A program made the position numbers and the translations under genes. A stretch of 64,000 nt of DNA, taken from the sequence record OU509535.1. One strand, given 5' to 3'. The notes under the pieces are model-generated. The model was not told where the DNA came from, searched no databases, and saw only the letters and a program-made list of their open reading frames with translations. Positions 1 through 64,000 of the stretch are shown here, in pieces (position 1 is the stretch's first letter; the number at the start of each line of letters is the position of its first letter).

Positions 1-107
1 ATTCAAGGAATTTCGACAGCTACGAGCTTCAAGGCTTAGCTTTTTATTTCTCTTCCCCTCCCTGTGGGGGGATGAAAATATCTCGTGCAAACGCCTTCAA
101 GTATTGA

Positions 108-216
108 AATTCACGAAGTGAATTGAAATTACTTGTTCTGTAGTCGAACGACAGTGAGACGTGAGAACCAAGTAATTTCTGCATGTATCAACGAAGTGCA
201 AACGGAGTTGATACAT
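108..216. repeat. cluster of inverted repeats (branched hairpins) in non-coding DNA
   Basis: aattcac-gaa-gtgaatt; gaaattacttg...caagtaatttc (11 bp); atgtatcaac...gttgatacat (10 bp). Confidence 0.7.
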
Positions 217-291
217 AGCACTTTAAAACATTATTGAATTCAATAATTAATATTATTATGGTTATTGAATAAATCAAATCGGAGTACTGAA

Positions 292-492
292 ATGAACACT
301 ATTATTTTTTTGATTATACTGAGTACTGGAACAACTACTACAGTAATTAAAGAAATGCCTTCTTTAGTACAATGCAAAGTAATTATGAATTCTGTTTATA
401 AACAACAAAAAGAAAAACAAAAAGAAACAAGTAAAACAGATTACTATTGTTTGAATTCAACAACTAACACTGAGTACTACCCAGATGAATGA
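292..492 (+). CDS. hypothetical protein
   Basis: ORF track; start moved to ATG after GGAG. Confidence 0.6.
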   Translation: MNTIIFLIILSTGTTTTVIKEMPSLVQCKVIMNSVYKQQKEKQKETSKTDYYCLNSTTNTEYYPDE

Positions 493-667
493 ATTCACAT
501 TTCTTTGTACTTATTATTATTATACTTCTGCTAATTCAAAGAAGTATGTAAAGGAAGAAATAAACGTATATACCAGTTCAGTACAAAAAGCTATTTGTGA
601 AGTACATTTGTACTTAGTTTGTTGTGAAGTAATTGATATAGAATATATACATACTATACAGGAATAA
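485..667 (+). CDS. hypothetical protein
   Basis: ORF track; overlaps upstream stop. Confidence 0.65.
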   Translation: MNEFTFLCTYYYYTSANSKKYVKEEINVYTSSVQKAICEVHLYLVCCEVIDIEYIHTIQE

Positions 668-672
668 ATCCA

Positions 673-1563
673 ATGACTTTAAGACTTATTACTGAAGTAG
701 ATAAAACAGTAAGTGAATTAACAAATGAAGAATTGAATAAACTGGACTGGAGTTCAGTACCAAAATCACAACTTCTTTCTATTTCAGATGATCGTTTGAT
801 GAAATGTCCCATCGACATTTTAACTCAAAGTTTTTCTTGTGATAACTATAGCAATGATTTGTGTTTATATATACTCACTTCTAAAATAAAGAAGTGTAAA
901 GATTTTCGAAATGGTTATGCATTATATCATTTATTAAGTAATTTTTTTAATCCAGATTTTATCAAGAATAATAAAAAAGAAATTCTTGAAATGTTAAAAC
1001 GACATGAAGAGATTCATAGTACTGTTACGTTTCCATCAGTTATTCAATACTTGATGAAACATGGAATCATTTCATTTTTTGATTTAAATATGACATTTGA
1101 AACAATCAATGACACATGGGATGCCTTGGAATCCGATATTCCACAGGAAGATTGGATTAAATTAATCACACGTACAAATTACCTTTATTCAACACTCACC
1201 GAACACCATTCAATACAGAATAATGTAATACCATTAAGTACTGAAAACTTATGGAAATGTGGGATTAAAATTAATCCAGTTGTTGATCTTTCGTGGGTTA
1301 AAAATGGAACATATGAATGTGATGATGATTATGTAGACATTTTACTGGAAGATTTAATAGAACAATTAAATTGTACTTCAATCACATGGGATGAAGTACT
1401 AGAAAAATTCAATACATATAAACTTGATAGGGACAACAATCCCCCTTATGGTGTTAATTTTATCAGTACTGTATGGGAACATCACATAATTGACACAAAG
1501 TTTGAATTGAACAGAGATGATTTTTTCAAGAAAAATTTACATCTTTACAAAACTATTGGATAA
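673..1563 (+). CDS. hypothetical protein (296 aa)
   Basis: long ORF, AGGA RBS; no motif recognised. Confidence 0.85.
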   Translation: MTLRLITEVDKTVSELTNEELNKLDWSSVPKSQLLSISDDRLMKCPIDILTQSFSCDNYSNDLCLYILTSKIKKCKDFRNGYALYHLLSNFFNPDFIKNNKKEILEMLKRHEEIHSTVTFPSVIQYLMKHGIISFFDLNMTFETINDTWDALESDIPQEDWIKLITRTNYLYSTLTEHHSIQNNVIPLSTENLWKCGIKINPVVDLSWVKNGTYECDDDYVDILLEDLIEQLNCTSITWDEVLEKFNTYKLDRDNNPPYGVNFISTVWEHHIIDTKFELNRDDFFKKNLHLYKTIG

Positions 1564-1628
1564 AAGTCTTGACATGGAGTACTATTTGAGTAATAATACT
1601 CCTATCTTAATTTAATGAGGAAACACTG

Positions 1629-1793
1629 ATGAAAACTCTATTACTTATTGTAGTCGTGGCTTTTGGTGCATGGTGGTTTTCTGAAAATTTCAGTATAACT
1701 TCAAAAAATGAACCACAACCTGTTCCACAAGAAGTACATACAGATTCTATTGGAACTAAGGTTGATAAAATAATTAAAGTAATTACGGAATAA
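1629..1793 (+). CDS. small membrane-anchored protein (54 aa, not in track)
   Basis: GAGG RBS, upstream TTGACA promoter; MKTLLLIVVVAFGAWWF hydrophobic N-terminus. Confidence 0.65.
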   Translation: MKTLLLIVVVAFGAWWFSENFSITSKNEPQPVPQEVHTDSIGTKVDKIIKVITE

Positions 1794-1798
1794 ATGTT

Positions 1799-2191
1799 AT
1801 GGGATTAGATGTAACTGAAGCTCAAGCAATATTAGAAAACCTAAGAGAAATTAATTCAAAATTTGAACGTAATAATCTCTGTACTGAATGGGATAAAAAA
1901 CTACCCAATAGATTTAGTGAAATCACCAATGAAATTTTATTCAGTACTGGTTTAGTTTGGATTGAACATACTTCTCTGTATAATGTTACATATCGCCATG
2001 AAGGTTATGTTGTTGAATACAATGAATATCTAGATCAGGGCATGAAAGTACTCAAAATGTGGAGTACTGTTTATAACGAGCTAGTAATTATCTGGATTAA
2101 TGAAAGTAATGGTGTTGACTTTGGTGATTTAGAAGAAAGCACTACTAAGGTAGCACCAATTTTTATTGGTTTGTCTGATAATACTATGTAA
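1799..2191 (+). CDS. hypothetical protein
   Basis: ORF track. Confidence 0.75.
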   Translation: MGLDVTEAQAILENLREINSKFERNNLCTEWDKKLPNRFSEITNEILFSTGLVWIEHTSLYNVTYRHEGYVVEYNEYLDQGMKVLKMWSTVYNELVIIWINESNGVDFGDLEESTTKVAPIFIGLSDNTM

Positions 2192-2213
2192 GTATCAAAG
2201 AAAGGTTTTGGTA

Positions 2214-2423
2214 ATGAATGAAAAATTGTCTTTAATTTGGAAAAGTGGTTATGACTTTAAAGTAACACCAAAGGAACTTAGAGTATTTCGTACTGAATAC
2301 TGTGAGTATCTTGATTTAGACCAGTATAATACCATTGTTCGTATTGAACACAATGGTGATGTTGAAGGTCATATCAGTGAAGTACTTGATAAAGCTATTT
2401 CAATTATTGAGGCAAAATTATGA
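2214..2423 (+). CDS. hypothetical protein
   Basis: ORF track; start moved to ATG after AAGG. Confidence 0.7.
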   Translation: MNEKLSLIWKSGYDFKVTPKELRVFRTEYCEYLDLDQYNTIVRIEHNGDVEGHISEVLDKAISIIEAKL

Positions 2424-2617
2424 TTAGTTTTTATTTGGCAGTGATACTTATTAATGGTAATATCGAACGAACACTAGGAAATGGGTTTTATAAAACACCT
2501 GAAGAATGCTATACGACGACAAATTGGCCTCGTGATAGTGAAACTCGTGAAGAATTCAAATGCATCAAGGCTACTGGTGATTTTGTAAATTTCAAAGTTA
2601 TTGAGGTACAAAAATGA
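2420..2617 (+). CDS. hypothetical protein
   Basis: ORF track; ATGA overlap. Confidence 0.7.
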   Translation: MISFYLAVILINGNIERTLGNGFYKTPEECYTTTNWPRDSETREEFKCIKATGDFVNFKVIEVQK

Positions 2618-2895
2618 TTCTTTCAAAAGAAGAACGTGATATTGTATTACACGCTTTATATTTTCTTGAGAATGAAAGTATGCATACGGATGCTTCTATG
2701 GCGTTGATTGAACGTCTTCAGAAAGAAGAAATACCAAAGATTTATCGTATCCGTTATCTTGATGGGGCTGGTGGTGATCGTATTGCCATTGCTGAATCAC
2801 GAGAAGAAGCAGAACAAATCTTCACTGATAATTATTTGAATCCTTTTTTGATGGAAGAAGTTTGTGAAGTGAAAAATGGCACTTTTATTGGTTGA
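2614..2895 (+). CDS. hypothetical protein (MILSKEE N-terminus shared with 3529)
   Basis: ORF track; GAGG RBS. Confidence 0.75.
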   Translation: MILSKEERDIVLHALYFLENESMHTDASMALIERLQKEEIPKIYRIRYLDGAGGDRIAIAESREEAEQIFTDNYLNPFLMEEVCEVKNGTFIG

Positions 2896-2919
2896 CAGAT
2901 AATAAAAATACAGTATAAT
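2892..2919 (+). promoter_or_regulatory. sigma70-like promoter for tRNA-like RNA 1
   Basis: TTGACA-16nt-TATAAT. Confidence 0.75.
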
Positions 2920-2928
2920 GTTTATATC

Positions 2929-3022
2929 AAGACAAGTAGTAGCTTAATATGTTCAAGAGCAGCGAGCAAACACAGCATAATGGTACTCGTCTGTACAGGT
3001 TGCATTCCTGTTTACTTGTCTT
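2929..3022 (+). tRNA. tRNA-like RNA 1 (non-canonical, ~19-nt anticodon loop)
   Basis: 10-bp end stem aagacaagta/tacttgtctt; D-arm-like gcttaatatgttcaagagc; gcgag/ctcgt stem; T-arm acagg-ttgcatt-cctgt. Confidence 0.55.
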
Positions 3023-40299: not shown

Positions 40300-40309
40300 T
40301 CTAATTCCA

Positions 40310-40689: not shown

Positions 40690-41046
40690 ATGAAAGATGT
40701 AACTTTACCAGTAGTTCAAACTAACTTTGAAAACCAATTCCTGGCCGAAGTATTCAAGATTGATAATGGCGTTGTATCAATCAATTACGGTTTCAATAGC
40801 GGTGGTTATGAAAAATTCATTTATTTCGTTACTGCCGATGGTGGATGCCTGGCAATTGATACGGTACTGAATGAATTCAGTAAAGTAGATTTTAATGATG
40901 ATAATGATCCTCAGTGGTATATCGTCGGCTATGACGTGAACTATGAAGATGAAGATCTTTATGATGATCATACTAATCAAAAAATTGAATCAGCTTGGGG
41001 TGATATTGAGGACGATTATCAGTCAGTCCCCGAGGATTTTGAATAA
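40690..41046 (+). CDS. acidic hypothetical phage protein
   Basis: start at ATG after AGGAG; GGY..FVTADG..IVGYDVNYED motif. Confidence 0.8.
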   Translation: MKDVTLPVVQTNFENQFLAEVFKIDNGVVSINYGFNSGGYEKFIYFVTADGGCLAIDTVLNEFSKVDFNDDNDPQWYIVGYDVNYEDEDLYDDHTNQKIESAWGDIEDDYQSVPEDFE

Positions 41047-41076
41047 AAAAACACTGGCATATACAGGGGAATAAAA

Positions 41077-41232
41077 ATGATCATCGTACTATCAGAGAAA
41101 GAAAAGAAATTAGTTCTTTCAGTACTGAAAGAATATCCCAGAAATATGCGGGAGCCGTTTGAAACAAATGGTGAATTCGAAGAGCATTTAAACGATATCG
41201 ATTTATTGATATCCAAGATCGAATCACAATAG
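41077..41232 (+). CDS. small hypothetical protein (51 aa, not in track)
   Basis: AGGGGA RBS; LSEKEKKLV resembles MILSKEE genes. Confidence 0.6.
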   Translation: MIIVLSEKEKKLVLSVLKEYPRNMREPFETNGEFEEHLNDIDLLISKIESQ

Positions 41233-41391
41233 TGATGTACTGTAAAACGTCCTGTAATCGATTATGGGACGTTTTAAGGAATAGCACTATGATTTATTCA
41301 GTACTGTAAAAAAACGCTTGTAAATTGATTCCAGTACTGTATAATGTTTTACATAGGAAAATTATTCTCCCCATTATTAGGAATAAAGAAT

Positions 41392-41619
41392 ATGTTTTAT
41401 CTTGGAACTGTTAAAGAAAATTCGAATGTAATTGAGGCGTCATTGATTTGTACTAATAATGAAGTCGCTGGCTATGATTTTGCAAAAGAGCGATTCATGA
41501 AATATTACACTGGTGATAATTCAGTGTCATTCGATTTTGAACGTATCGGTGATGGTGTTACAATTATGAAATTTGAAGATCTCCCTGAAATCGATTTTGA
41601 TTTTGTCGTTACACTGTAA
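41392..41619 (+). CDS. hypothetical protein
   Basis: start moved to ATG after AGGA. Confidence 0.7.
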   Translation: MFYLGTVKENSNVIEASLICTNNEVAGYDFAKERFMKYYTGDNSVSFDFERIGDGVTIMKFEDLPEIDFDFVVTL

Positions 41620-41717
41620 AAAAGTACTTGCATAATTCTTTCAGTACTGTATACTGTACTTATACCAAACAAAAGCAAATGGAATCAGTACTGATTCCCT
41701 GTAAAGGAGATAGACCA

Positions 41718-41969
41718 ATGTCAGATCGTATCACTCGCAAAATGGTAGCAGATAAAGTTGCTGGGCTGAATCTTGCTATTGACCGTCGTGGATTACCTGA
41801 AAAATATCAGGTAGTACTGGAAGATGGTAAATTCAATATTGAATTACAGCCGTCTCATGTTTATACTAATCCAAAAGTAATACAAAAGGATTTGAGTACA
41901 CGAGAAGCATATTTTTATCTGAAAGGTATGTTTCAAATTCTTCTCGACAATGTACCACATAAAGATTAA
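41718..41969 (+). CDS. hypothetical protein
   Basis: start moved to ATG after AAGGAG. Confidence 0.8.
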   Translation: MSDRITRKMVADKVAGLNLAIDRRGLPEKYQVVLEDGKFNIELQPSHVYTNPKVIQKDLSTREAYFYLKGMFQILLDNVPHKD

Positions 41970-42070
41970 AGAAAAAGGGGAGACAACAAGTCTCCCTTTT
42001 TTGTATTCAGTACTAAATTATATAGATACATTTATGCACCCTGTGGGTTAGTAGCTTGTTCTGCTTTATG
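41968..42070 (-). ncRNA. complete ~100-nt small RNA gene (conserved family)
   Basis: minus TTGACA-17-TATAAT (42076-42104); agc-agaacaa-gct; ACCCACAGGGTGCATAAATGTATCTAT; ends in terminator. Confidence 0.7.
41974..42002. terminator. bidirectional intrinsic terminator
   Basis: aaaaggggagac-aacaa-gtctcccttttt. Confidence 0.85.
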
Positions 42071-42195
42071 TAGTAATTATATGATAAAGCTGGTGGCTTG
42101 TCAACACTTATTTTAAAATAAAAAGTACTGAATAGTACTTGCAAAAAGTATTCAGTACTGTATAATGTTTATATTGAGATTAAGGAGTACTTACT

Positions 42196-42735
42196 ATGTT
42201 AATCAAAATGTATCACGGTTCTAATAATTTTGATCACCGCCAGGGATATCTGGGTGGAAAACCTGGCAATTTTCATATGGGTTTTGGACTATATCTAACT
42301 AACTCTTATCGCTGGGCTGATAATTATGGGCGACGTCATTATGAGTTAGATTTAGATATTTGTAGTACTGGTGCCGCACATAATGTATGGATTCCTACTA
42401 AACACTTTATGGAATTCATAAGAGTATATTGTACTAAAAAGTTTTATACAATGTGCTGTAAAGAATTTAAAGACCGTGAATCTTTGAATGTAGAACGCGT
42501 TGAATTGCTTATTATCAATATGGAAAGGCACGTTACGAAAATCGCTAAACCATTTGCTGAATTCGTCGCTGCCTGGGGTTGCACGCATAGTATTGAAATA
42601 TCCGGTAACTATGGTGGTGTTTGCGTGCGGCTTTATGATTTCAGTACTATAAAGAATTGTATCATAAGCCAGGAAACGCAGGATTTTTATTATCCAGATG
42701 AATTGACAAGATATCCTCAAAAAAACTTGTATTAA
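42196..42735 (+). CDS. putative ADP-ribosyltransferase-fold protein (H-Y class)
   Basis: YHGS near N-terminus and GFGLYLTNSYRWADNYG, the PARP/DUF3990-like signature. Confidence 0.55.
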   Translation: MLIKMYHGSNNFDHRQGYLGGKPGNFHMGFGLYLTNSYRWADNYGRRHYELDLDICSTGAAHNVWIPTKHFMEFIRVYCTKKFYTMCCKEFKDRESLNVERVELLIINMERHVTKIAKPFAEFVAAWGCTHSIEISGNYGGVCVRLYDFSTIKNCIISQETQDFYYPDELTRYPQKNLY

Positions 42736-42785
42736 TGATTCAGTACTGATATAATGTATTAAATTAATCAGGAGGAATATCTTAA

Positions 42786-42914
42786 ATGAATAACCGTCAA
42801 TTGATGATCGATGCATCTCGTTTTCGTTCAAAAGAAGAAAAGAGAAGTTGCATTAAATGGGTTTTGTCAACTTTCATTATTGGATTACTTATTGTTGCTT
42901 TTGTTTATAGTTAG
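42786..42914 (+). CDS. small membrane peptide (42 aa, not in track)
   Basis: GGAGG RBS; hydrophobic C-terminus. Confidence 0.55.
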   Translation: MNNRQLMIDASRFRSKEEKRSCIKWVLSTFIIGLLIVAFVYS

Positions 42915-42999
42915 TACTTGACAATATAATCCAGTACTGTATAATGTTTATCAAAGGGAATGAATTATTCATTCCCAAAATAATCAAAGGAGTTTTACC

Positions 43000-43224
43000 A
43001 TGATCTATATTATCAAAGTATCCACGACCGTAGGAAAATCAGAAGTTGTGGCTGTTATCACTTCCCTGGAAGCGAAAGATCTTCATACCCCGTTTAATGT
43101 ATGGGTGGAGGATAATTTCGGCCAATTCAGTACTGCTGAATATATCGAACAATTCGCCGTCCCGGATACTGGTAAAATCAAAGTGGATCGTATCCTGGAT
43201 TTTGATAACAGTAATTACTTTTAA
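43000..43224 (+). CDS. hypothetical protein
   Basis: ORF track; AAGGAG RBS. Confidence 0.8.
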   Translation: MIYIIKVSTTVGKSEVVAVITSLEAKDLHTPFNVWVEDNFGQFSTAEYIEQFAVPDTGKIKVDRILDFDNSNYF

Positions 43225-43310
43225 AAACGTTTGACAACTGATTTCAGTACTGTATAATGTTTATCAAAGGGAATGAATTATTCATTCCCGATTAATCAAA
43301 GGGGTTTATC

Positions 43311-43457
43311 ATGAAAGAGTATATCTTTGAAGTAACTTTCACCTTTGGCCCGCACCAACTGATCCGGTCTTCTGGCTACAACCGCGAACAAGCATTCAGC
43401 AACCTTCGCCGTATGTACCCCAATGTCGTGACCTGGGTCAAGTGTGAAGAAGCATAA
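43311..43457 (+). CDS. small hypothetical protein (48 aa, not in track)
   Basis: AGGGG RBS, own promoter and 5' hairpin. Confidence 0.65.
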   Translation: MKEYIFEVTFTFGPHQLIRSSGYNREQAFSNLRRMYPNVVTWVKCEEA

Positions 43458-43537
43458 AATAATTAGTCAGTACTATTGACAACGGGTGATAGTACTGCTA
43501 TAATTATTTTAACTTATACGGAATGGAGTTAAAACAA

Positions 43538-43774
43538 ATGTTCAGTGTCAGCAAACAAGGCGACAAATTTCTGGTTCAATACCATCATTTTGATCTGGTA
43601 TACACTCAGCCAGATTGTGTATTCAGTACTCAGGAAGGTGCTGAAAAGCACAAAAAAGCCTTGATCGAAAATAGCAACAGTGGTACATTAGATTTCATCC
43701 AACAGTACTGGAATGAATCTAAGCTGGTGGACGGTTATTCCAACACAGTTTATTATGTAGGTATCACTGATTAA
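43538..43774 (+). CDS. hypothetical protein
   Basis: start moved to ATG after GGAG. Confidence 0.75.
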   Translation: MFSVSKQGDKFLVQYHHFDLVYTQPDCVFSTQEGAEKHKKALIENSNSGTLDFIQQYWNESKLVDGYSNTVYYVGITD

Positions 43775-44052
43775 TCGGGAGTACTGTTAATGTATATGCC
43801 AATTATCATACCGTTAGCAGTACTGTTAATCGCCGCCGTTATCTGCGAACAATATCATTTGTTAGGAATGTAAACTATGATTCAATGTGAATTGTCAGTA
43901 CTGATCACGCTGTTCTATATGTTGGGGCAAAAGAAACAAGATATTTCTGGTGATAATGCATTATTGTATCAATCATTAGACCAATGGCAACGATCTGAAT
44001 TAAGCAATGCATGGGCGAAAGGTTACAACGATAGTACTGCAAAATAATTTAA

Positions 44053-44089
44053 AAAAGGGGTTGACTTACGTCAGCCCTTTTGTTATCAT
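44053..44089 (+). promoter_or_regulatory. terminator/promoter fusion cassette
   Basis: gggTTGACttacgtcagccctttt-gt-TATCAT. Confidence 0.75.
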
Positions 44090-44095
44090 TAGTAC

Positions 44096-44145
44096 ATAGC
44101 AAGAACAATGCTCAAGCCCACAGGGTGCCGAAGTGTATCTATAGT
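44096..44145 (+). ncRNA. small non-coding unit (conserved family)
   Basis: agca-agaacaa-tgct; GCCCACAGGGTGCCGAAGTGTATCTATAG. Confidence 0.7.
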
Positions 44146-44233
44146 TTATGTAGTACTGAATCATTAATTTTCTTGACAATTGGTTTAGTACTGGATATAA
44201 TAGCCGCCATTGAATACAGGAGGATTTTAAAAA

Positions 44234-44500
44234 ATGGCCTATCATACACCACATAGACACTTCATTGATAAACGCGGTATGGCTTTTAAAGCAATGAGTG
44301 ACAATCGTAACACACAAATGTACTTTAAAGATATGACGTTAGAAGAAGCTATTGAAGCTGTAAGGAATGATCGTAAGCTTTCCAAGAAAGTTGCATCAGT
44401 ACTTAATGCTTTTTGGTTTGAACGTACTACCAACAAAGAATACAAAGAAAAGATGATTGCACTTGGTAAAGTAGTAAGAGAAGAAAAATTATATCTTTAA
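44234..44500 (+). CDS. hypothetical protein
   Basis: ORF track; GGAGG RBS. Confidence 0.8.
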   Translation: MAYHTPHRHFIDKRGMAFKAMSDNRNTQMYFKDMTLEEAIEAVRNDRKLSKKVASVLNAFWFERTTNKEYKEKMIALGKVVREEKLYL

Positions 44501-44751
44501 GTACTTGACTATGTGATTCAGTACTGCTATTATATATTCATACCAATTAAGGAGATTAACCAAATGAAACAAGCTAAATTTAATTCAGAAATCAAAGCTG
44601 CAAAAGCACATAAAGTACAGTTAGTAGTACTGGCTATTGTATCAATCTTTTTGCTGTGCAACATCGGCTAAAATAATTATTACAGTACTATTGACAACAC
44701 GTGATAGTACTGGTATAATTACTTTACCAAATCAAAAAGGAGTAACCAAAA

Positions 44752-45027
44752 ATGCGGATTAAACTTACCAGTGATGAGATTCATTCAGTACTGACTACCA
44801 ATATGCAGGACTGGAAAAAGTACGCTGATATCGAAGAAGTCCAGGAACTCAATGATGATTTGAGTGTAGATGAAATTATCACTATTTGCTCATCTCAATT
44901 CTTTGATGATATCAATGATGAAGAGCAAGATGTATTTGATATCATGGATAAACATTTTATTGCGTATGATGTTTTTCCGTACACTCGCCAGGCTTATATT
45001 CTTATTCACAACATTTACAACAAATAA
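44752..45027 (+). CDS. acidic hypothetical protein
   Basis: ORF track; AAGGAG RBS. Confidence 0.8.
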   Translation: MRIKLTSDEIHSVLTTNMQDWKKYADIEEVQELNDDLSVDEIITICSSQFFDDINDEEQDVFDIMDKHFIAYDVFPYTRQAYILIHNIYNK

Positions 45028-45039
45028 GGAATAATAATC

Positions 45040-45405
45040 ATGGAAAAAGAATTTAGAATCAAATACAATATCAGTACCGATGGCGGTTTTGAAGTACCAG
45101 AAGAAGATCAAGAACGTCTTAATGATGTTATTATGATTGACATTTCAAATAAAATCATTCAAGGCTACCGCGAAGGCGAATTGTGTGAATCGTTGATGGA
45201 TCAATTCAATGAAGTGGAAACGTTTTATCGTGGCTGGTGGAGTATCGAAGAAGTTCACAAAGTACACGAATACCGTGTATTCTGGATTAACGGCGTTAAT
45301 GATATCGAAGATATCATTGTAAAAGAAAGTAGTGAATCCGCCGCCATTCAGTACTTTAAAGATCACTACCCCAATAAACGTTATCACCATTTAGAAAAAA
45401 TTTAA
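45040..45405 (+). CDS. acidic hypothetical protein
   Basis: ORF track; AAGGA RBS. Confidence 0.8.
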   Translation: MEKEFRIKYNISTDGGFEVPEEDQERLNDVIMIDISNKIIQGYREGELCESLMDQFNEVETFYRGWWSIEEVHKVHEYRVFWINGVNDIEDIIVKESSESAAIQYFKDHYPNKRYHHLEKI

Positions 45406-45493
45406 AAAGTACTTGACACCTAATATCAGTACTGCCATAATATACACATCAAGGGGAGAATAGTTCTCCCCACCATAAAAGGAGTATAATACT

Positions 45494-45925
45494 ATGTCTA
45501 AATCTATTTCTCTCGCACCAATTGAAGTACAGAATGCTTTTGCTCATGTACGTTCGTTTTTTCCTGATGTTGTTAGTGTTTCATTTGATGAAGATTGCCG
45601 CTGGAGTTATGAAACGCCTGGTGGATATTCCCCGGACTTTGATGATCATGATATTGACCAAGATATTCTAGAAGCTGCCGCTGATGCTCAATATAACATT
45701 ATGGTTCCAGTTGAATATATTGCGGATTGCTTTATTGAAATTGAACTAGCTCGCAGTACTGTAAAAGATAAACCAACTATTGTATTAACACAAATTGATG
45801 AAGAATTGTGGGACGTTACTGTGGGCGAAGGTGCTGCAACAACTTGGGAAACATTAGAAAGTGCTGTGTGTGAATATACCGATTCAATCCGTGAATATCA
45901 GTTTAAAGTTTCACGTAGTGCATAA
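45494..45925 (+). CDS. acidic hypothetical protein
   Basis: ORF track; AAGGAG RBS. Confidence 0.8.
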   Translation: MSKSISLAPIEVQNAFAHVRSFFPDVVSVSFDEDCRWSYETPGGYSPDFDDHDIDQDILEAAADAQYNIMVPVEYIADCFIEIELARSTVKDKPTIVLTQIDEELWDVTVGEGAATTWETLESAVCEYTDSIREYQFKVSRSA

Positions 45926-46013
45926 AAAAGGTATTGACAACATAATCCAGTACTGATATATTAATACACATAGGGGCAAACAACTTGCCCCACTAAACAA
46001 AAGGAACTACCAA

Positions 46014-46370
46014 ATGATTACTAAATTCTACGCTACTCGTGAACTGGCTCGGAACGTCGCTCGTGAAGAAGGTGAAACCTTCAAAGATATGGGTAAAGAT
46101 TCCCCTGCTGGTCAACGCTGGGCAGTGCTGTTCCGCGAGGTCAAAGACCTGGTAGAAAACGCTAAAGCCGTTGAAATGAACGTTCCCACCAAAGAAGATA
46201 AAGATCTGACTGATGCCCTCGCCGCTGCATTCTCCGCGATGGATAAAGCAGCAGCGGTAGTACTGAAAGTGCCGGAATTCGTAACCCGCAAAGTGCATTC
46301 AGTACTACAAAATAAATTCAACGGTAAACAGGTTCAAGTGTTTACTAAACGTAAAATTCCGGTCATGTAA
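46014..46370 (+). CDS. hypothetical phage protein, host-optimal codons
   Basis: FYATRELAR..KDMGKDSPAGQRWAV. Confidence 0.85.
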   Translation: MITKFYATRELARNVAREEGETFKDMGKDSPAGQRWAVLFREVKDLVENAKAVEMNVPTKEDKDLTDALAAAFSAMDKAAAVVLKVPEFVTRKVHSVLQNKFNGKQVQVFTKRKIPVM

Positions 46371-46393
46371 AATCTGACTATTACAGTACTAAC

Positions 46394-46415
46394 AAAGGGG
46401 CTTCAATGCCCCTTT
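46394..46415. terminator. intrinsic terminator
   Basis: aaaggggc-ttcaat-gccccttt. Confidence 0.7.
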
Positions 46416-46448
46416 AAACGTCCTGTAAACCATTCTAAGAGGTTTTAC

Positions 46449-46697
46449 ATGAAAAAGGTACAACTACACAAAGGAGTGATGAAAGTTCATTATAATGCCC
46501 CGCAACGCATTATAGATAGAGCCATTGAACTAGCCAATCAATACCTAGCTGGTGGATTAACTCCCAGGAAGTTAAGCAACGGGAAGTTATATGTAATCAA
46601 CGTTGATACTAATAATCGTATAGTAATCAAAGGTGAAAGCATATCACTGTATGAACATCAGCAGTATAACAAGAAAGTAAAAAATATTAGTAGATAA
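46449..46697 (+). CDS. small basic protein, possible ParE/RelE-like fold
   Basis: YVINV..NNRIVI..SLYEHQQYN resembles ParE-like small phage proteins (recall only). Confidence 0.35.
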   Translation: MKKVQLHKGVMKVHYNAPQRIIDRAIELANQYLAGGLTPRKLSNGKLYVINVDTNNRIVIKGESISLYEHQQYNKKVKNISR

Positions 46698-46776
46698 GTG
46701 TTGACAACTCATTTCAGTACTGCCATAATGTATACATACAAGGCAATACCGCCTAATAACATAGGAGTAACTGAAA

Positions 46777-47199
46777 ATGAAAAAATCCACTAAAATTGTC
46801 TTAGGTGTATTTGTTGTTCCGACAGTCGCCTTTTTTACTTGTGCTATGATTTTTGGTGATGCTTCTCGGGTTGCCGCAAAAATCGAAAAAGAAAAACAAG
46901 TCCAGGCACAAGTTAAGAAAGAAGAAAAACCAAATTATAACACTGTATGGGAAGCAATTTGCCATACCAGTAATGGTAAAAGGATCTCCATCCTTACAGC
47001 GATGAATAATGGAAAATCAATCGTCGGAAACGAATATATGGAAGTTACTTCCAGTACTGGTAAAGAATTTGTAATGACGAACTATAATAACAATAACGTT
47101 GCAATTGTTACACAAGATTTTAAAGGTAATGCAGTACTTGAATATCATACGGAATATGAAGTAATATTTGCAAAATGCACATTTGAATGGGGTGCATAA
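46777..47199 (+). CDS. membrane-anchored exported protein
   Basis: N-terminal KK + hydrophobic segment; AGGAG RBS. Confidence 0.75.
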   Translation: MKKSTKIVLGVFVVPTVAFFTCAMIFGDASRVAAKIEKEKQVQAQVKKEEKPNYNTVWEAICHTSNGKRISILTAMNNGKSIVGNEYMEVTSSTGKEFVMTNYNNNNVAIVTQDFKGNAVLEYHTEYEVIFAKCTFEWGA

Positions 47200-47214
47200 A
47201 ATAAACAAAAAATC

Positions 47215-47256
47215 AAAAAAGGGGGGGTTGACATATGTCAGCCCCTTTGCTATTAT
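47215..47256 (+). promoter_or_regulatory. terminator/promoter fusion cassette
   Basis: gggTTGACatatgtcagcccc-tttgc-TATTAT. Confidence 0.7.
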
Positions 47257-47262
47257 TAATAT

Positions 47263-47307
47263 CAAGAAAACAAGCTAACCCACAGGGTGCATAAATGTAT
47301 CTATAGT
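47263..47307 (+). ncRNA. small non-coding unit (conserved family)
   Basis: CTAACCCACAGGGTGCATAAATGTATCTATA identical to reverse complement at 42021-42051. Confidence 0.65.
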
Positions 47308-47382
47308 TTATTAAAGAATTTTAGTACTTGACAACGTAGTACAGCAGTACTAAAATATCTACATACAAAGGAGATTACCAAA

Positions 47383-47967
47383 ATGAACAAACATCTTAAA
47401 GTACTGAATAAATGTAAATCCAATACCGAAATGTTACTGTACTGTTACAAAAATTTAATTAAACTCGGGAGAGGTTCATCCAGAACAGTATTTTTGTTAA
47501 CAAAAAATAAAGTACTGAAAGTTGCTCATAACCATATTGGCAACCAACAGAATACGGCGGAAATCACCGCCTGGCTGTATGTTGATTATGATCGCTATTA
47601 TAATAAACGTTTTTTCGCTAAAGTGTTCCCTGATATGTCGCATTTCAAAGATGTATACATAGTACAGGAGTACTGCGACAATATCAGTACTAAAGAAGCG
47701 AAGCCATACATTGAACATTACTTGACACCTCGCACAATTGAAAATGAGCGTGCTAAACGCTTCCACACGGCGTTAAGAGATGTAGACAATACCCTTAACT
47801 ATAAAACGCTGGTGGACTTAAACATGGGCAATATAGGCCGTTCTGTAAGGGGTGCAATCAAAATCCGTGATTATGGATTATCTGAGCATATTGCTAAACA
47901 GTACCGAGAAGCCCGCTTCCAATACCAGAAGCTCAAAAGTATTAGTAAAATAAGTATTGATTTATAA
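47383..47967 (+). CDS. putative Ser/Thr protein kinase (protein-kinase-like fold)
   Basis: Gly loop LGRGSSRTV, VLK lysine, NTAE, catalytic DLNMGN, DYG. Confidence 0.75.
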   Translation: MNKHLKVLNKCKSNTEMLLYCYKNLIKLGRGSSRTVFLLTKNKVLKVAHNHIGNQQNTAEITAWLYVDYDRYYNKRFFAKVFPDMSHFKDVYIVQEYCDNISTKEAKPYIEHYLTPRTIENERAKRFHTALRDVDNTLNYKTLVDLNMGNIGRSVRGAIKIRDYGLSEHIAKQYREARFQYQKLKSISKISIDL

Positions 47968-48034
47968 TTTCAGTACTGGTATAGTACTTTCACAGGGGAG
48001 ATAATCTCCCCCAAATCACAAAGGAGATTTTACC

Positions 48035-48397
48035 ATGAGTACTAAACCATTTGTAACCACTCGTTCCAATCTGACTGAGATCTATGTACATGGTGGATAT
48101 GAGGAAACGTATGTCACTGGTATTATGGTAGAATTCCATCAGGGTTATCGGTTTATGTTGGTAGATTCAGAAATCTATCATACCCAACAAGATAAACATG
48201 GTTATGTCAATAAGTACTCCACCGATGAAGTACTGAAACGCCTGGATAATAAAATTAAACAAATTCAAAAACATCTTGACAACGGCGGAAAACTTAATCA
48301 TTTACTTTGGGATAGCTTAGATCCCTGCTACGGTTCGGATGCATATGGTAAAAGCCGTGACACTGCAATGAAAGTACTTAAAGATTATTTCTTTTAA
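48035..48397 (+). CDS. hypothetical protein
   Basis: ORF track; AAGGAG RBS. Confidence 0.8.
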   Translation: MSTKPFVTTRSNLTEIYVHGGYEETYVTGIMVEFHQGYRFMLVDSEIYHTQQDKHGYVNKYSTDEVLKRLDNKIKQIQKHLDNGGKLNHLLWDSLDPCYGSDAYGKSRDTAMKVLKDYFF

Positions 48398-48488
48398 GTA
48401 TTGACATAGGTTATCAGTACTGTATAATGTTTTGCATACACAAGAGATTCCAGTACTGGAATCTCTAATCTAAAGGAGAATACCGAAA

Positions 48489-48770
48489 ATGATTACTGGT
48501 CACATTACTAACTATGCAAAACGCCGCGATGTAGAAATCGAAGTACTGAAAGCTGGCGAAGTTGACGATGACGCCCAGGTATGGTTCTACACCGCAGACA
48601 ATGACTGCGAACCAGTACTGATGTACCTGATTAATAATGATGGTTCTCTTACTTATCGTAGCAAACTGATGAAGTCACTGGAAGATATGCCAGCACATAT
48701 CAATAATAAAGAAGTACTGAAACGCGTAATCTGCTACATCTCAGACCAGCACAAAGCGGATATGATGTAA
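48489..48770 (+). CDS. hypothetical protein
   Basis: ORF track; AAGGAG RBS. Confidence 0.8.
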   Translation: MITGHITNYAKRRDVEIEVLKAGEVDDDAQVWFYTADNDCEPVLMYLINNDGSLTYRSKLMKSLEDMPAHINNKEVLKRVICYISDQHKADMM

Positions 48771-48783
48771 TCTTTACAAATAT

Positions 48784-48817
48784 GGGGGTTGACTAATGTC
48801 AGCCCTATTGGTATTAT
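48784..48817 (+). promoter_or_regulatory. terminator/promoter fusion cassette (degenerate T run)
   Basis: gggTTGACtaatgtcagccc-tattgg-TATTAT. Confidence 0.65.
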
Positions 48818-48823
48818 ATATTC

Positions 48824-48873
48824 AATCCAGCGAAATGGTCTAACCCTCAAGGGTGCCGAGATGTATCTATAGT
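48824..48873 (+). ncRNA. small non-coding unit (conserved family)
   Basis: cca-gcgaaa-tgg; ACCCTCAAGGGTGCCGAGATGTATCTATAG. Confidence 0.65.
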
Positions 48874-49022
48874 TTAATGATTTGAAGTACTGAAAAATAA
48901 TTATAAAAAAAGTACTTGTATTTGTGATTCAGTACTGCCATAATATATCCATACAAGGGAAACATAGTGTTTCCCGATAATCCACAGCAATAGTGCTGGT
49001 GGATGAACCAGGAGTAATAACC

Positions 49023-49319
49023 ATGCAAGACAAATCAATTCATGTTCAAGTAGTTTCAAGCCGTGGCTATGACGATGTAGTACTGGATATCATGGTTAAA
49101 GATCTGCGGGACTATGCAATCATTGCACGTCATATCATGGTTAACTCCATTTGTATCAGTACTGGTGCTGATATGGAAGAAAACCGCTTACATATAGAGG
49201 AACATCTATACAAAGCACGTATGAATGATAGTAGTGTATTCATCATTGAAGGTGCCGAGGGTAAAGAGTATACCGTATACCTTCGCCAGTACCTGGAAGT
49301 AGAAAAAGAAGAAGATTAA
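49023..49319 (+). CDS. hypothetical protein
   Basis: start moved to ATG after AGGAG. Confidence 0.8.
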   Translation: MQDKSIHVQVVSSRGYDDVVLDIMVKDLRDYAIIARHIMVNSICISTGADMEENRLHIEEHLYKARMNDSSVFIIEGAEGKEYTVYLRQYLEVEKEED

Positions 49320-49410
49320 TTTATATAAAGTACTTGCTTTAATAGTTCAGTACTGTATACTGTTTATCAAGGGGAAGCAATAGTGCCTCCCCACTCATAG
49401 GAGATACACC

Positions 49411-49809
49411 ATGTTTACTATCACTTCTCGCCAGGATGTTCTGTACGTTGCTAAAACTTTTGGTCTGGAAGCACTGGATCATATCATCCGCAACAGTACA
49501 ATGAATGCTGATGCAAATGGGATTATCATTGATACTCGGGCATGGGCCGCCAATGAAGTCATTGCCATCGAACATGTTAACGATGGTAACAATGTCTATG
49601 AAGTGGATGCATGTTTCAATGCTGTTAATGTAGCAGGTATGTATATCACTGGTATTGATGATATCACTATCATCCGCTCCGGTATGGGTAACTTCTCCAT
49701 GCCTTTACGTTCAGCAATGGAAAGAAAAGAGATCAGTACTGAACAATGTGCAAATTTAATCAATGAGATTACCGCACGCAATGAAGCTGCTGCTATCCTT
49801 TACCCGTAG
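49411..49809 (+). CDS. hypothetical protein
   Basis: ORF track; AGGAG RBS. Confidence 0.8.
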   Translation: MFTITSRQDVLYVAKTFGLEALDHIIRNSTMNADANGIIIDTRAWAANEVIAIEHVNDGNNVYEVDACFNAVNVAGMYITGIDDITIIRSGMGNFSMPLRSAMERKEISTEQCANLINEITARNEAAAILYP

Positions 49810-49828
49810 TAGTTCAGTACAGTACTGT

Positions 49829-49860
49829 AAGCCCATAGGATAAACCCTGTGGGCTTTTTC
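49829..49860 (+). terminator. intrinsic terminator ending the central block
   Basis: aagcccatagg-ataaac-cctgtgggcttttt. Confidence 0.8.
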
Positions 49861-50115
49861 TTTATTGGTAATATGATTGGGTAGGTTATGGTGTAAGTAC
49901 TGTCAGAATTGATTACAGGAGGATAGCGTAAAAATTGATTAATTGATTTCAGTACTGAATTGTCATTGAGAAAAAATATTAGTCAAAAAATAATTGACTT
50001 AGAAAATAATTAAACCAATACCTTATACTGTATGAAATAGTTTCGGACTGTTATTATATATTTGACTAAGTAAAGTGGTATTAGGCTTAGCACTTTTATA
50101 TAGTATTACAGTACT

Positions 50116-50199
50116 GAACAATTTATACTATTCTGTACACTATTCTGTACATCATTCTGTACTGGAACAATTTATACTATTCTGTACACTATTCTGTAC
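50116..50199. repeat. 35-bp direct repeat x2 (period 49) built from TATTCTGTAC units
   Basis: gaacaatttatactattctgtacactattctgtac at 50116 and 50165. Confidence 0.9.
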
Positions 50200-50305
50200 T
50201 ACACTAATTGAAATTCATGGATATAAAACCCTTGCCTCTTCAATAAAAGTGTGCTATGATGTAATTAATATGTGTGTTTCTATTATGTGAAATTATGGGT
50301 ACAAA

Positions 50306-61835: not shown

Positions 61836-62107
61836 TGCAAAAATATGAATTTGACTCAGTACATATCATCATAAGTACTTTATGGGATATGGATCCTTCT
61901 TATACAACAGTGTATTATAAAATATTCTCTTCAATACAAGATGATTTTAATAAAAAATACGCACAAAAAGAAGTACTCATAGAATCGAATAATAAAGTGA
62001 TAAAAGAAAAAATATCGTACTACATTATTTCCTTTGGTGTATTGAAATTTATTTGTACAAATTCATTTAGTATACAATACTTCGGCGACTGGTGTCAATT
62101 ATTATGA
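61835..62107 (+). CDS. paralog family B
   Basis: IQDDFNKKYAQ. Confidence 0.8.
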   Translation: MQKYEFDSVHIIISTLWDMDPSYTTVYYKIFSSIQDDFNKKYAQKEVLIESNNKVIKEKISYYIISFGVLKFICTNSFSIQYFGDWCQLL

Positions 62108-62403
62108 CTAAAGAAGAATATATGAAAGTTTTGTTCATTAAAGAAATTTTTGTCCAAATGGTATTGGGTACTGATTATTTGTACAAAAATGCATTCATTA
62201 ACATTCTTGAAGTACTACAAGATGATTTTGATTCAAAGTATAATGGAATGAAGATAAATTACAAAACATATAATCAGGATTATATTAAAATTATCAAAAA
62301 ATATACAATTAATTTAAGTTCTGTAAATTTTGAAACTGCACTTGGTATGAAGTTTAAACATTTTGATTATTATTTAATTCCAATTGGATTTAAAGATGAA
62401 TAA
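62104..62403 (+). CDS. paralog family B
   Basis: MTKEEY..LQDDFDSKY. Confidence 0.8.
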   Translation: MTKEEYMKVLFIKEIFVQMVLGTDYLYKNAFINILEVLQDDFDSKYNGMKINYKTYNQDYIKIIKKYTINLSSVNFETALGMKFKHFDYYLIPIGFKDE

Positions 62404-62701
62404 ATTCGAATACCAATCAATACAATTAATTAAAGAGTATTCAAATTCTTTACATAGTTCTTTTATTTTAAAAAATAATAATTATTCCACTAAAATTTGT
62501 GATATAATTAATAATTATTTTAAATGTATATCTAAAGAATTTTCTACAAAATATAAGAATAAAAATATAAAAACCGATGTAGATGTTTTTGTAATAGTGG
62601 GTTTCATTATACAACAAGATTTATGTGTTGTAAAATCACTAGCGAATAGTACTAATTATTTCTTTAATTGTAAATCCCTTATAGAAGGTGAACTTTTGTG
62701 A
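62396..62701 (+). CDS. paralog family B
   Basis: MNKFEY..ISKEFSTKY. Confidence 0.75.
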   Translation: MNKFEYQSIQLIKEYSNSLHSSFILKNNNYSTKICDIINNYFKCISKEFSTKYKNKNIKTDVDVFVIVGFIIQQDLCVVKSLANSTNYFFNCKSLIEGELL

Positions 62702-63030
62702 ATAAACCAAACATTTATCTGGAATTTGATAACAGCATAAAGCAAGTTAATATGTTGAGATCAATTTTGAGAGATTGTTATATAGAAGCATATTACTACA
62801 AGAACTGGAATACTAAAATGTATTCTAATACATTATATTACTCATTCAATGAATATTTAGATTACATTTCCGAAGAATTCAATGAAAAATATAATTCAAT
62901 TGTACTTACCTATAATTCAAAAAAGCATGTACTGAATAATATAGAAATGAGTTTGAAATTTATCACATTACATTTATCCAGTTCAGAATTACCAACGACA
63001 ATTATTATACATCCTTCATATCTGGAATAA
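62698..63030 (+). CDS. paralog family B
   Basis: ISEEFNEKY. Confidence 0.75.
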   Translation: MNKPNIYLEFDNSIKQVNMLRSILRDCYIEAYYYKNWNTKMYSNTLYYSFNEYLDYISEEFNEKYNSIVLTYNSKKHVLNNIEMSLKFITLHLSSSELPTTIIIHPSYLE

Positions 63031-63036
63031 AATATA

Positions 63037-63240
63037 ATGAATGATTTGGATTCCATGTTGTGGTATACTTTATCCGTTCTTTCATTTGAACGCGATAAAC
63101 ACAAAGTACAAGCATCAAAAAATCCAGATATATTACAGAAAAAGAAAGAATACGCATTAGTGTATTCTTTGGAAAAAACATTTATTTCTATGCATCTGGA
63201 ATACAGAGAATACATAACATCAAATGGTATTAAAAAATGA
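63037..63240 (+). CDS. hypothetical protein
   Basis: ORF track. Confidence 0.65.
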   Translation: MNDLDSMLWYTLSVLSFERDKHKVQASKNPDILQKKKEYALVYSLEKTFISMHLEYREYITSNGIKK

Positions 63241-63572
63241 AATATAAATCCATAGTACACAAAAGATTTAAGTCAATATATTACACGGAAATTAATGTTC
63301 ATAAAAAAGTAAAAGGTATTGATTTTTATATTGATAAAGTATATCTGGATTATGATGTAGTTACTAATACATTCGAATGCACAGATCTCTTTGATTCAAT
63401 ACCAGTACCTAACTTGGCTGAATTAAGTGAAGAAGAAGAATTTCAGTACTCACTAGTATATGAAGATATATGGGGATTTAAATGGGATTATTATCGAATG
63501 GTGTCTTATCAAAAAGCACTAATATCCTCTATAAAAAAACAAAATTACTTATTAATTAATCTGGAATATTAA
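63237..63572 (+). CDS. paralog family A
   Basis: NLAELSEEEEFQYSLVYE. Confidence 0.8.
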   Translation: MKYKSIVHKRFKSIYYTEINVHKKVKGIDFYIDKVYLDYDVVTNTFECTDLFDSIPVPNLAELSEEEEFQYSLVYEDIWGFKWDYYRMVSYQKALISSIKKQNYLLINLEY

Positions 63573-63573
63573 T

Positions 63574-64000
63574 ATGCAAAACAAGTACAATTATAATGAC
63601 CCCGAATTTGCTACACTCGCATATGATATAGCAAAAATGGTAAAAGATTTAAAGGAATGTGCTATTGGTACAAAGGATATCAGTACTGTGATGAATACCG
63701 ATGTAAATTTTAAGAAAGAATTACAGGTAACTGATTCGACAAATCCTTTGGCTGCATTCAAGAATTGTGTGGTAAATTACTATGGTGTAGTACAATGTAA
63801 CATCGGATATAAATCCCACGAATGTAATATAGTAACTTTTGATGCATATGGAAATCTCCATGAAATTGATATTTATAAGGGTCAAAAATTAATCATTAAA
63901 TTCATGGATAGATACCTATTTACCAAATCATATCATTTCGAATTACCAAAAATTGATGGTGCATTCATTGATAATTATGATGCTTATATTTTTCAGTTAA
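63574..64000 (+). CDS. paralog family A long form, truncated by window end
   Basis: open to the edge, ends DNYDAYIFQL like 52421. Confidence 0.75.
   Translation, partial: MQNKYNYNDPEFATLAYDIAKMVKDLKECAIGTKDISTVMNTDVNFKKELQVTDSTNPLAAFKNCVVNYYGVVQCNIGYKSHECNIVTFDAYGNLHEIDIYKGQKLIIKFMDRYLFTKSYHFELPKIDGAFIDNYDAYIFQL

Follow-up and report, generated by a model that had tools for sequence, protein, structure and literature searches.

The stretch of DNA analysed here (the window; 64,000 nucleotides, identical to bases 1–64000 of sequence record OU509535.1) raises the question of why one six-base palindrome, AGTACT, is repeated so often in a phage genome, and of what might read it. The record is an unannotated 347,546-bp assembly of a Klebsiella pneumoniae phage that has segments of 94–97% identity in common with phages RaK2, K64-1, RCIP0023, KP13-7 and Muenster; this group is the genus Alcyoneusvirus, T4-related jumbo myoviruses of the RaK2/K64-1 type. 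The window has a GC content of 31.8% and carries nearly all of its open reading frames (ORFs) on the + strand. A first-pass annotation, made from the letters alone, had described AGTACT as a highly iterated palindrome comparable to HIP1 of cyanobacteria, and had proposed that a phage-encoded GTAC/AGTACT modification, a repair bias or a genome-wide binding protein maintains it. Genome totals given below are those of the window plus the pieces of OU509535.1 beyond it (L001–L006); other genera were sampled at 25–50 kb per phage, and Escherichia coli K-12 at 50 kb. The reading favoured here, tentatively and at a strength that approaches probable without reaching it, is that AGTACT is the binding site of a putative phage-encoded symmetric DNA-binding factor, which would read it as a tag of self.

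The window contains 301 copies of AGTACT, against 21.5 expected from base composition. Order-1 and order-2 Markov models predicted 15.0 and 45 copies, respectively, and 100 dinucleotide-preserving shuffles of the window rendered 14.8 ± 3.9 (maximum 26). In the whole genome (347.5 kb), 945 copies were found where 117 were expected (8 times), each 50-kb piece lying 5.6–7.6 times over expectation and the window 14 times. With AGTACT over-represented about 8–20 times and GTAC 2.5 times, the recognition sites of ScaI and RsaI are not avoided. The earlier hand count of about 12 copies in the first 3 kb proved exact (12 in positions 1–3000), and the suspicion of a higher density at 30–50 kb was borne out by the 23–34 sites per 4 kb observed at 28–52 kb, compared with 9–20 elsewhere in the window. 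The context that had been named as favoured, CAGTACTG, was present 101 times in the window (0.59 ± 0.68 in shuffles). When other palindromes were compared, AGTACT indeed stood alone: the runner-up among 6-bp palindromes in the window was GAATTC, at 2.1 times expectation, while AT-rich palindromes were found at 0.7–1.1 times.

As the annotation had stated, the site occurs both between genes and in all three reading frames, the + strand genes containing it as AGT-ACT (84 cases), nnA-GTA-CTn (78) and nAG-TAC-Tnn (21). Its further claim, that protein sequence alone does not explain the excess, survived both codon shuffles: the coding sequences of the window hold 203 copies, against 59.2 ± 6.2 when synonymous codons were shuffled with the protein fixed and 22.0 ± 4.5 when the codon order was shuffled. 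The pressure for AGTACT shows in the protein sequences themselves through dipeptide use. Ser-Thr pairs numbered 146 (71.5 expected; 64 for the reverse pair Thr-Ser) and Val-Leu pairs 190 (96 expected; 83 for Leu-Val), and 95 of the 146 Ser-Thr pairs are written AGT-ACT, a value that codon usage would put at 22. An artefact of composition, codons or dipeptides was thus ruled out by the Markov models, the dinucleotide shuffles and the two codon shuffles. A signal limited to repeats or promoters was ruled out as well, since 794 genomic sites lie outside the terminal-repeat region described below, where coding and non-coding DNA are equally rich in them (2.39/kb and 2.63/kb, respectively); within the window, this background coat amounts to about 2.4–3.3 sites/kb, in coding and non-coding DNA alike.

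Judged by its sequence context, AGTACT is the core of a palindrome of ~12 bp, with the genus consensus TTCAGT-ACTGAA. The extended consensus, TTCAGTACTGAA, has flanks that are reverse-complement symmetric, and this 12-mer was found 31 times in the genome, where 0.04 copies were expected. A position scan of CAGTACTG showed the inner GTAC to be strict (variants at 1–3 times expectation), the A/T positions to be semi-strict and the outer pair to be graded, C..G reaching 83 times and other bases 7–19 times. One-nucleotide variants were enriched 8–19 times when the change fell at an outer position, and 1–3 times when it fell in the inner GTAC. The likeness to HIP1 therefore holds statistically: a single short, hyper-abundant palindrome in coding and non-coding DNA, whose one-nucleotide deviations lie mainly at the outer positions. 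The spectrum of xGTACy sites was described by a multiplicative half-site model (R² = 0.93; weights A 2.4, G 1.4, T 1.2, C 0.55), the full palindrome being somewhat more frequent than the model predicts. Certain spacings between sites were also over-represented (8 pairs at 10 bp and 20 pairs at 20 bp in OU509535.1; 11 pairs at 21 bp in phage CBB). Such a graded, symmetric and additive spectrum is the pattern of a dimeric DNA-binding protein, and is less expected from a site of the restriction or methylase type. This bears on a rival explanation that we regard as unlikely but deserving of a full hearing, namely that AGTACT is the target of a phage DNA modification, set by an orphan methyltransferase (MTase) or another base modifier, the mark being protective or an epigenetic switch at early promoters and genome ends; the high density would then be selected, or driven, because the sites spread the mark. 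HIP1, for which cognate MTases have been proposed, provides a precedent, as does Dam/GATC, and the outward bias of one-nucleotide deviations is seen here too. Graded half-sites and helical phasing, however, are not predicted by an enzyme site. In addition, the deamination neighbours AGTATT/AATACT, which deamination at a modified site or a Vsr-type repair bias would be expected to deplete, were present 561 times in the genome for 500 expected (1.12 times); the repair bias proposed in the first-pass annotation found no support in this respect.

The region with the most sites is related to the ends of the genome. The annotation and paper of phage Muenster give a direct terminal repeat (DTR) of 20,030 bp predicted by PhageTerm, which its authors describe as precise although the terminase resembles the headful-type gp17 of T4. 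The following features of the window correspond to it or flank it.

30260 to 50087, + strand: DTR-equivalent region, a block of early genes (by BLAST, Muenster base 1 falls at 30260 and base 20030 at ~50087)
30136 to 30251, no strand: tandem array (ATTCAGTACT)n with 7 AGTACT, the strongest tandem repeat of the window
50106 to 50205, no strand: right-edge array, with CAGTACTG at 50109–50116 and then (ACTATTCTGTAC)x6, with a period of ~12 bp and TGTAC cores

The density of AGTACT was 7.9/kb in the DTR-equivalent region (12.2/kb in non-coding and 4.9/kb in coding DNA) and 3.25/kb outside it. In the left array, the sites start at 30142, 30182, 30202, 30212, 30222, 30232 and 30242, with a strict 10-bp register among the final five, and 12 bp separate the end of the array from the inferred left end of the DTR. 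No other AGTACT cluster in the 347.5-kb genome is as dense (7 sites in 120 bp, compared with 4 in the runner-up), and the Muenster record closes with the same array, which fills its final 100 bp. Immediately beyond the inferred right end of the DTR comes the right-edge array, which ranks second in density among the GTAC clusters of the window, so that the top two GTAC clusters both lie at DTR edges. A similar arrangement was observed in other genera. The annotated 22,456-bp repeat of CBB has 6.4 AGTACT/kb, compared with 2.2/kb in its structural region, and is preceded by four AGTACT, the last of which ends 17 bp from the boundary; in the record of phage Munch, an AGTACT lies 15 bp ahead of the last base. 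The adjacency of an array, as at pac sites, therefore holds relative to the predicted termini of Muenster, CBB and Munch. The left-terminus junction itself, CCCCTTCCGCTA followed by TATC, is common to CBB, a Pectobacterium phage (L019:1912-1930), and Munch, a Salmonella phage (end of L020, start of L022), while that of Alcyoneusvirus is different (GCCACTA followed by AGTCCG).

Within the DTR-equivalent region, AGTACT is tied to predicted early promoters. A distance of exactly 20 bp between two sites is strongly over-represented, with 19 such pairs in the window and one in the rest of the genome. The pairs coincide with predicted σ70-type promoters, recognised as TTGACA-like and TATAAT-like hexamers 16–18 bp apart and followed by a gene in the same orientation: the first AGTACT shares its final T with the -35 hexamer, the second ends 1–2 nt upstream of the -10 hexamer, and start codons follow 40–95 bp downstream. 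On the + strand between 30.2 and 50.2 kb, 38 strong predicted promoters were found (at least 10 matches of 12), 12 of them scored as perfect in the scan; AGTACT is present in the spacer of 25 of the 38, and 11 carry both sites. All the double-site promoters of the window fall inside the DTR-equivalent region, as in the following cases.

32580 to 32613, + strand: double-site predicted promoter, AGTAC-TTGACG at the -35, the second AGTACT starting 20 bp downstream and ending 2 nt before the -10 hexamer CATAAT
34269 to 34301, + strand: double-site predicted promoter, 12/12 match to TTGACA-N16-TATAAT
40017 to 40049, + strand: double-site predicted promoter, 12/12 match, followed by an AGTACT-centred 5′-leader hairpin at 40064–40087
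42913 to 42945, + strand: double-site predicted promoter, 12/12 match
45408 to 45441, + strand: double-site predicted promoter, 11/12 match

The positions of AGTACT in these promoters are conserved in three genera. The early promoters of phage 121Q retain the AGTACT fused to the -35 hexamer and, in some cases, both sites, and those of CBB retain both sites, with a spacing of 21 bp in 11 cases. Several of the 5′-leader hairpins are long perfect palindromes with AGTACT at their centre.

32238 to 32259, no strand: perfect palindrome of 22 bp around a central AGTACT, potentially forming a hairpin
33918–33935, 37691–37710, 40064–40087, 41681–41698 and 48443–48466: similar AGTACT-centred palindromes

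These leader palindromes, together with the fact that nearly all genes lie on one strand and most sites are transcribed, are what could be said for a signal at the RNA level, with AGUACU serving in RNA processing or structure, or for a by-product of codon, dipeptide or repeat content. Such an explanation is scarcely credible, and is largely refuted already: the sites in promoter spacers, those upstream of the -35 and the terminus arrays lie outside the mRNA, the flanks are symmetric, and the excess outlasts the codon and dinucleotide null models and extends to the 794 sites outside the DTR. In 121Q (L007:17089-31255), the motif was also seen as CCAGTAC...TACTGG stems in intrinsic terminators that follow paralogous RCC1-like 'DNA condensation' genes, so that it has been recruited into terminators as well. 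A second class of early promoters in the window lacks AGTACT and has its -35 hexamer (TTGACT or TTGACA) within a GC-rich stem-loop; we take this class to resemble the promoter-early stem-loop cassettes of T4-type phages. The repeat ATCTTTACAAA is often found upstream of the stem-loop promoters, with further copies at 31653–31674 and 32532–32551.

44054–44081: stem-loop class early promoter
47221–47248: stem-loop class early promoter
48785–48806: stem-loop class early promoter
38889–38917: stem-loop class early promoter

The distribution of AGTACT among phages was then considered. The counts observed and expected in the samples were as follows.

121Q (Asteriusvirus): 221 observed, 17.0 expected, 13.0 times
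GAP32 (Mimasvirus): 114 observed, 16.8 expected, 6.8 times
CBB (Mimasvirus): 112 observed, 16.8 expected, 6.7 times
Munch (unclassified): 100 observed, 16.7 expected, 6.0 times
Serratia phage BF (Eneladusvirus): 51 observed, 8.3 expected, 6.1 times
PA5oct (Pseudomonas relative): 3 observed, 16.6 expected, depleted
arall (unrelated E. coli phage): 0 observed, 13.8 expected, absent
E. coli K-12, 50 kb: 3 observed, 11.6 expected, depleted

AGTACT is the most enriched palindrome in every enriched relative sampled, and the excess is common to at least five lineages of enterobacterial jumbo phages, in which the motif is 45–130 times denser than in the E. coli K-12 sample. No earlier description of the excess of AGTACT or CAGTACTG was found in full-text searches on these phages and on over-represented phage palindromes, or in the CBB supplementary tables. 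The preference for the flanking bases drifts: Alcyoneusvirus and Asteriusvirus favour C..G, the other lineages A..T or no particular pair; the G..C flank is the rarest in all of them (7/945 in OU509535.1, and 0/221, 0/114, 0/112, 1/100 and 0/51 in the enriched phages in the order listed).

This last observation is relevant to the idea that a host protein reads AGTACT. The obvious candidate would be SlmA, the nucleoid-occlusion factor of Enterobacterales, whose site, GTGAGTACTCAC, shares the AGTACT core, and which the phage would titrate or activate; all the enriched phages infect Enterobacterales, and the Pseudomonas relative, whose host genus is not known to have SlmA, is not enriched. We consider a host reader very improbable. 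Each half-site bound by SlmA must have G at position 1, T at 2, a purine at 3, A at 4 and G at 5 (PMC3020112), whereas the phage consensus has T1 and C3 and so does not provide such a half-site; no lineage uses any flank less than G..C, and GT.AGTACT.AC occurs only 3 times in 347 kb. On these flank requirements, the motifs were ruled out as SlmA sites.

The scarcity of AGTACT in arall, PA5oct and E. coli suggests a counter-selection that a DNA modification would relieve, and such a modification would also explain how ~940 ScaI-type sites are tolerated. Against this, CGTACG is absent from OU509535 and GGTACC from the samples of four relatives, which indicates that GTAC is not generally protected. 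The avoidance of restriction sites in OU509535 is extreme: its genome lacks GCGC, CTTAAG (0 for ~117 expected) and ~20 other 6-bp palindromes, CTGCAG, GAGCTC, CAGCTG, GCATGC, GCTAGC and CGTACG among them. Similar lists of absent palindromes were obtained for 121Q, GAP32, CBB and Munch, and none for PA5oct. GGTACC, the KpnI site, is not avoided in OU509535 (44 copies, 1.7 times expectation) and is entirely missing from the 121Q, GAP32, CBB and Munch samples.

The genome was inspected for an enzyme that might write such a mark, and for proteins that might read the site; the genes that had to be considered were these.

L006:8953-9843: C5-MTase (PF00145)
L001:22431-22949: T1-Dam-like MTase (PF05869)
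35725 to 36222, + strand: H-NS/StpA-like early gene, 166 aa, with a PF22470 N-terminal domain

No AGTACT-specific MTase was recognised in the genome. Its only two recognisable MTases are the C5 and the T1-Dam-like enzymes, and neither tracks the enrichment, so that the modification put forward in the first-pass annotation gained no support from this search; a novel enzyme may yet lie among the hypothetical proteins. Members of the C5 family are kept throughout the clade, yet arall has a 46%-identical homologue and not one AGTACT, which ruled out this enzyme as the driver. For the T1-Dam-like enzyme, no specific link was seen: the family is very widespread (>1200 phage records), and two divergent alleles of it occur among equally enriched Alcyoneusviruses. 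RaK2 has a Mom-like DNA modification gene, ORF149 (L012:30506-31090), of which OU509535 keeps only a 34-aa remnant (L005:28243-28344) while the enrichment persists. Three further ORFs with (D/N)PP(Y/F) motifs were examined and no MTase was found among them, one being the tail tube protein. In favour of the modification, the RaK2 paper describes two MTases and reports that the DNA is methylated and resistant to methylation-sensitive enzymes (data not shown there), and AGTACT-specific orphan MTases exist in other viruses, such as mollivirus; the RaK2 bisulfite report, however, points to CpG, and that paper contains nothing on promoters or on AGTACT.

As for readers, the H-NS/StpA-like protein, for which the Muenster annotators obtained an HHpred hit to NP_417155.1, has homologues of ~34% identity in Asteriusvirus-type phages, and may be a silencing or anti-silencing factor for a genome of 32% GC. 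It is unlikely to read AGTACT: it looks like a non-specific binder of AT-rich DNA, and it was not detected in Mimasvirus or Munch. The Cro-like protein CBB_511 was rejected since it was found only in Mimasvirus, and the genes around the sigma factor and the repeat boundaries showed no informative domains.

The fate of individual sites indicates which property is maintained. Between genera (~58% protein identity), orthologous genes hold 55/58, 56/59 and 56/56 AGTACT sites, of which only 6, 5 and 14, respectively, are at aligned positions common to the orthologues (9–25%); most of the non-shared positions encode different amino acids in the two genera. Within the genus, AGTACT was kept in 92–93.5% of cases, compared with 88.6% for control hexamers. 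Changes were polarised in a clean 20.6-kb alignment of four genomes (OU509535.1, K64-1, RaK2 and KP13-7), in which 88 sites were invariant, while 13 had been lost and 10 gained as singletons. Losses of AGTACT (0.129) were 0.6 times those of hexamers of the same composition (0.216; P = 0.018), and gains per one-off neighbour (0.066) were 6.4 times those of the control (0.0103; P = 5 × 10–6). The resulting gain/loss ratio, 10.8, matches the equilibrium excess and corresponds to a scaled advantage of ~2.4 per site. Weak selection or biased conversion for AGTACT is thus acting now, and it is density, not position, that is conserved. Two large ORFs on the - strand, with 42% GC, stand apart at 0.3–0.4 AGTACT/kb, which is the background level.

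L002:19270-21696 and L002:24316-27696 (genome 133–142 kb), - strand: tail-spike/depolymerase-type genes (β-helix; Peptidase_S74 chaperone)

These two genes look like recent horizontal acquisitions, and their near-background content of AGTACT is what would be expected of newly acquired DNA under a lineage-specific pressure.

The same data could be accommodated by a drive devoid of function, in which biased repair or gene conversion (for instance by a very-short-patch-like nickase) makes AGTACT, the promoter and terminus sites being secondary co-options. Gains rise to 6.4 times the control while losses fall only to 0.6 times, positions turn over freely, coding and non-coding densities are equal outside the DTR, and the foreign genes would simply not yet be 'ameliorated'. 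Weak selection, however, would produce the same asymmetry of gains and losses. No neighbour class is depleted, the outer-position variants being instead enriched 2.5–3.6 times, and no Vsr-like gene was noticed, although no search of the genome was aimed at one. A drive would also leave unexplained the exact promoter registers across genera, the 10-bp arrays and their placement at the DTR edges. We therefore hold it to be improbable.

Of the three options offered by the first-pass annotation, the genome-wide binding protein fits best, on account of the graded half-sites, the phasing at 10, 20 and 21 bp and the fixed positions at promoters and DTR edges. The reader would be a symmetric, probably dimeric, double-stranded DNA-binding factor of the enterobacterial jumbo phage clade. 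Since AGTACT is 45–130 times denser in these phages than in host-type DNA, it would serve as a tag of 'self' consisting of sequence only. The sites fall into three grades. The first is a uniform coat of ~2.4 sites/kb, the same in coding and non-coding DNA, kept by a weak and continuous directional pressure that bends proteins. The second consists of the helically phased pairs of the DTR early promoters, over the -35 and in the spacer next to the -10, whose occupant would occlude the host RNA polymerase and so shut off early transcription. The third consists of the phased arrays at both DTR edges, the left one 12–17 bp from the genome end, which might position end formation or the initiation of packaging for a T4-type terminase without sequence specificity of its own. 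The phased sites of the second and third grades would be those of high affinity. In its broadest form, which appears possible but on balance doubtful, the proposal is that the RaK2/121Q/GAP32/BF group has a self/non-self system based on sequence alone in chemically ordinary DNA, with one factor setting the site-specific ends of the 20-kb DTR for a T4-type headful terminase, silencing the σ70 early promoters and marking the chromosome; the tag would be upheld by a weak selection that reshapes proteins across >300 kb.

What the sequences show is the enrichment, its distribution in the clade, the turnover, the positions of the sites and their scarcity in host DNA; that the reader is a protein and not an enzyme mark, its identity, the repression of early promoters and a part played at the termini are interpretation. 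Several points weigh against the binding-factor reading. No candidate reader protein was found among those examined. In promoters with a 17-bp spacer, AGTACTG contributes its TG as an extended -10 element, so the promoter signal could in part reflect ordinary recognition by RNA polymerase. The termini are predictions by PhageTerm or by the authors for relatives, and hence are inferred for OU509535.1; the four-genome polarisation is based on only 10 gains and 13 losses; and 945 sites of a type that other enterobacterial phages avoid would also suit a protective modification.

Two further features of the DTR were observed. On the + strand of the genome, the Chi sequence GCTGGTGG was counted 16 times, where 0.8 copies would be expected, and the - strand has 4 copies; that 8 of the 16 + strand copies lie in the DTR, in a single orientation, suggests that one end of the genome is protected against RecBCD. 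According to the annotations of relatives, a YeeU-like antitoxin and a YafQ-like ribonuclease toxin are encoded among the early DTR genes.

35328, 37343, 42089, 43723, 45233, 46548, 47808 and 48995, + strand: Chi GCTGGTGG in the DTR (further copies at 2767 and 27288)
33054–33665 and ~46.4–46.7 kb: YeeU-like/YafQ-like gene region (homology to K64-1 gp417/gp471 and Muenster 006/041; names taken from annotations)

Iterated palindromes have remained unsolved in cyanobacteria for decades, and one is now available in tractable lytic phages of E. coli K-12 and Klebsiella laboratory strains. Fixed promoter positions and genome-end arrays are handles that HIP1 lacks, and should allow the reader protein or enzyme to be fished out directly. 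If the tag defines the DTR ends, it would explain how precise ends coexist with a T4-like terminase, the puzzle of the Muenster paper, and the reading, if true, would show that sequence density is enough for a virus to label its DNA as self. AGTACT is in any case a simple diagnostic signature of this phage group and, because the tail-spike modules lack it, flags recently acquired genes.

Among known systems, the excess of AGTACT is best filed as a new, phage-borne form of the iterated-palindrome or genome-tag phenomenon, to which the promoter architecture, the link with the terminal repeat and the conservation in the clade are added beyond the earlier annotation. With HIP1 (GCGATCGC) it shares a single short palindrome in excess throughout the genome, in intergenic DNA and in all frames of genes, with its one-nucleotide variants outermost and copies that turn over; it differs in belonging to a virus clade, in its AT-rich hexamer core, in having no cognate MTase found, and in being fixed in promoters and arrayed at genome termini. 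The DNA uptake sequences DUS/USS and Chi are likewise short, self-dense words spread through coding DNA at a cost to proteins, with weak continuous upkeep and positional turnover, and are read by a specific machine; unlike AGTACT, which is palindromic and has a putative reader, they are asymmetric, orientation-dependent and cellular, and their readers are known. In the case of SPO1 TF1, and of the modified bases hmC and hmU of T4 and SPO1, a phage factor discriminates phage DNA from that of the host, and its targets are strong early promoters grouped within a long terminal redundancy; there the discrimination relies on a modified base, whereas here it would rely on sequence alone and the factor is putative. 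The SlmA site GTGAGTACTCAC of E. coli and Klebsiella is also a 12-bp palindrome with the same central AGTACT, but the phage consensus has neither its G1 nor its purine at position 3, and the phages use the G..C flank least of all. The ScaI-type restriction-modification systems recognise the identical word, which phages normally avoid (0 for 13.8 expected in arall) and which the OU509535 clade accumulates. Finally, pac and cos arrays are phased short repeats beside the genome-end site, which serve small terminase subunits, and the known pac sites are unique loci; AGTACT, in contrast, lines the DTR edges in such arrays and is also scattered ~940 times over the genome.

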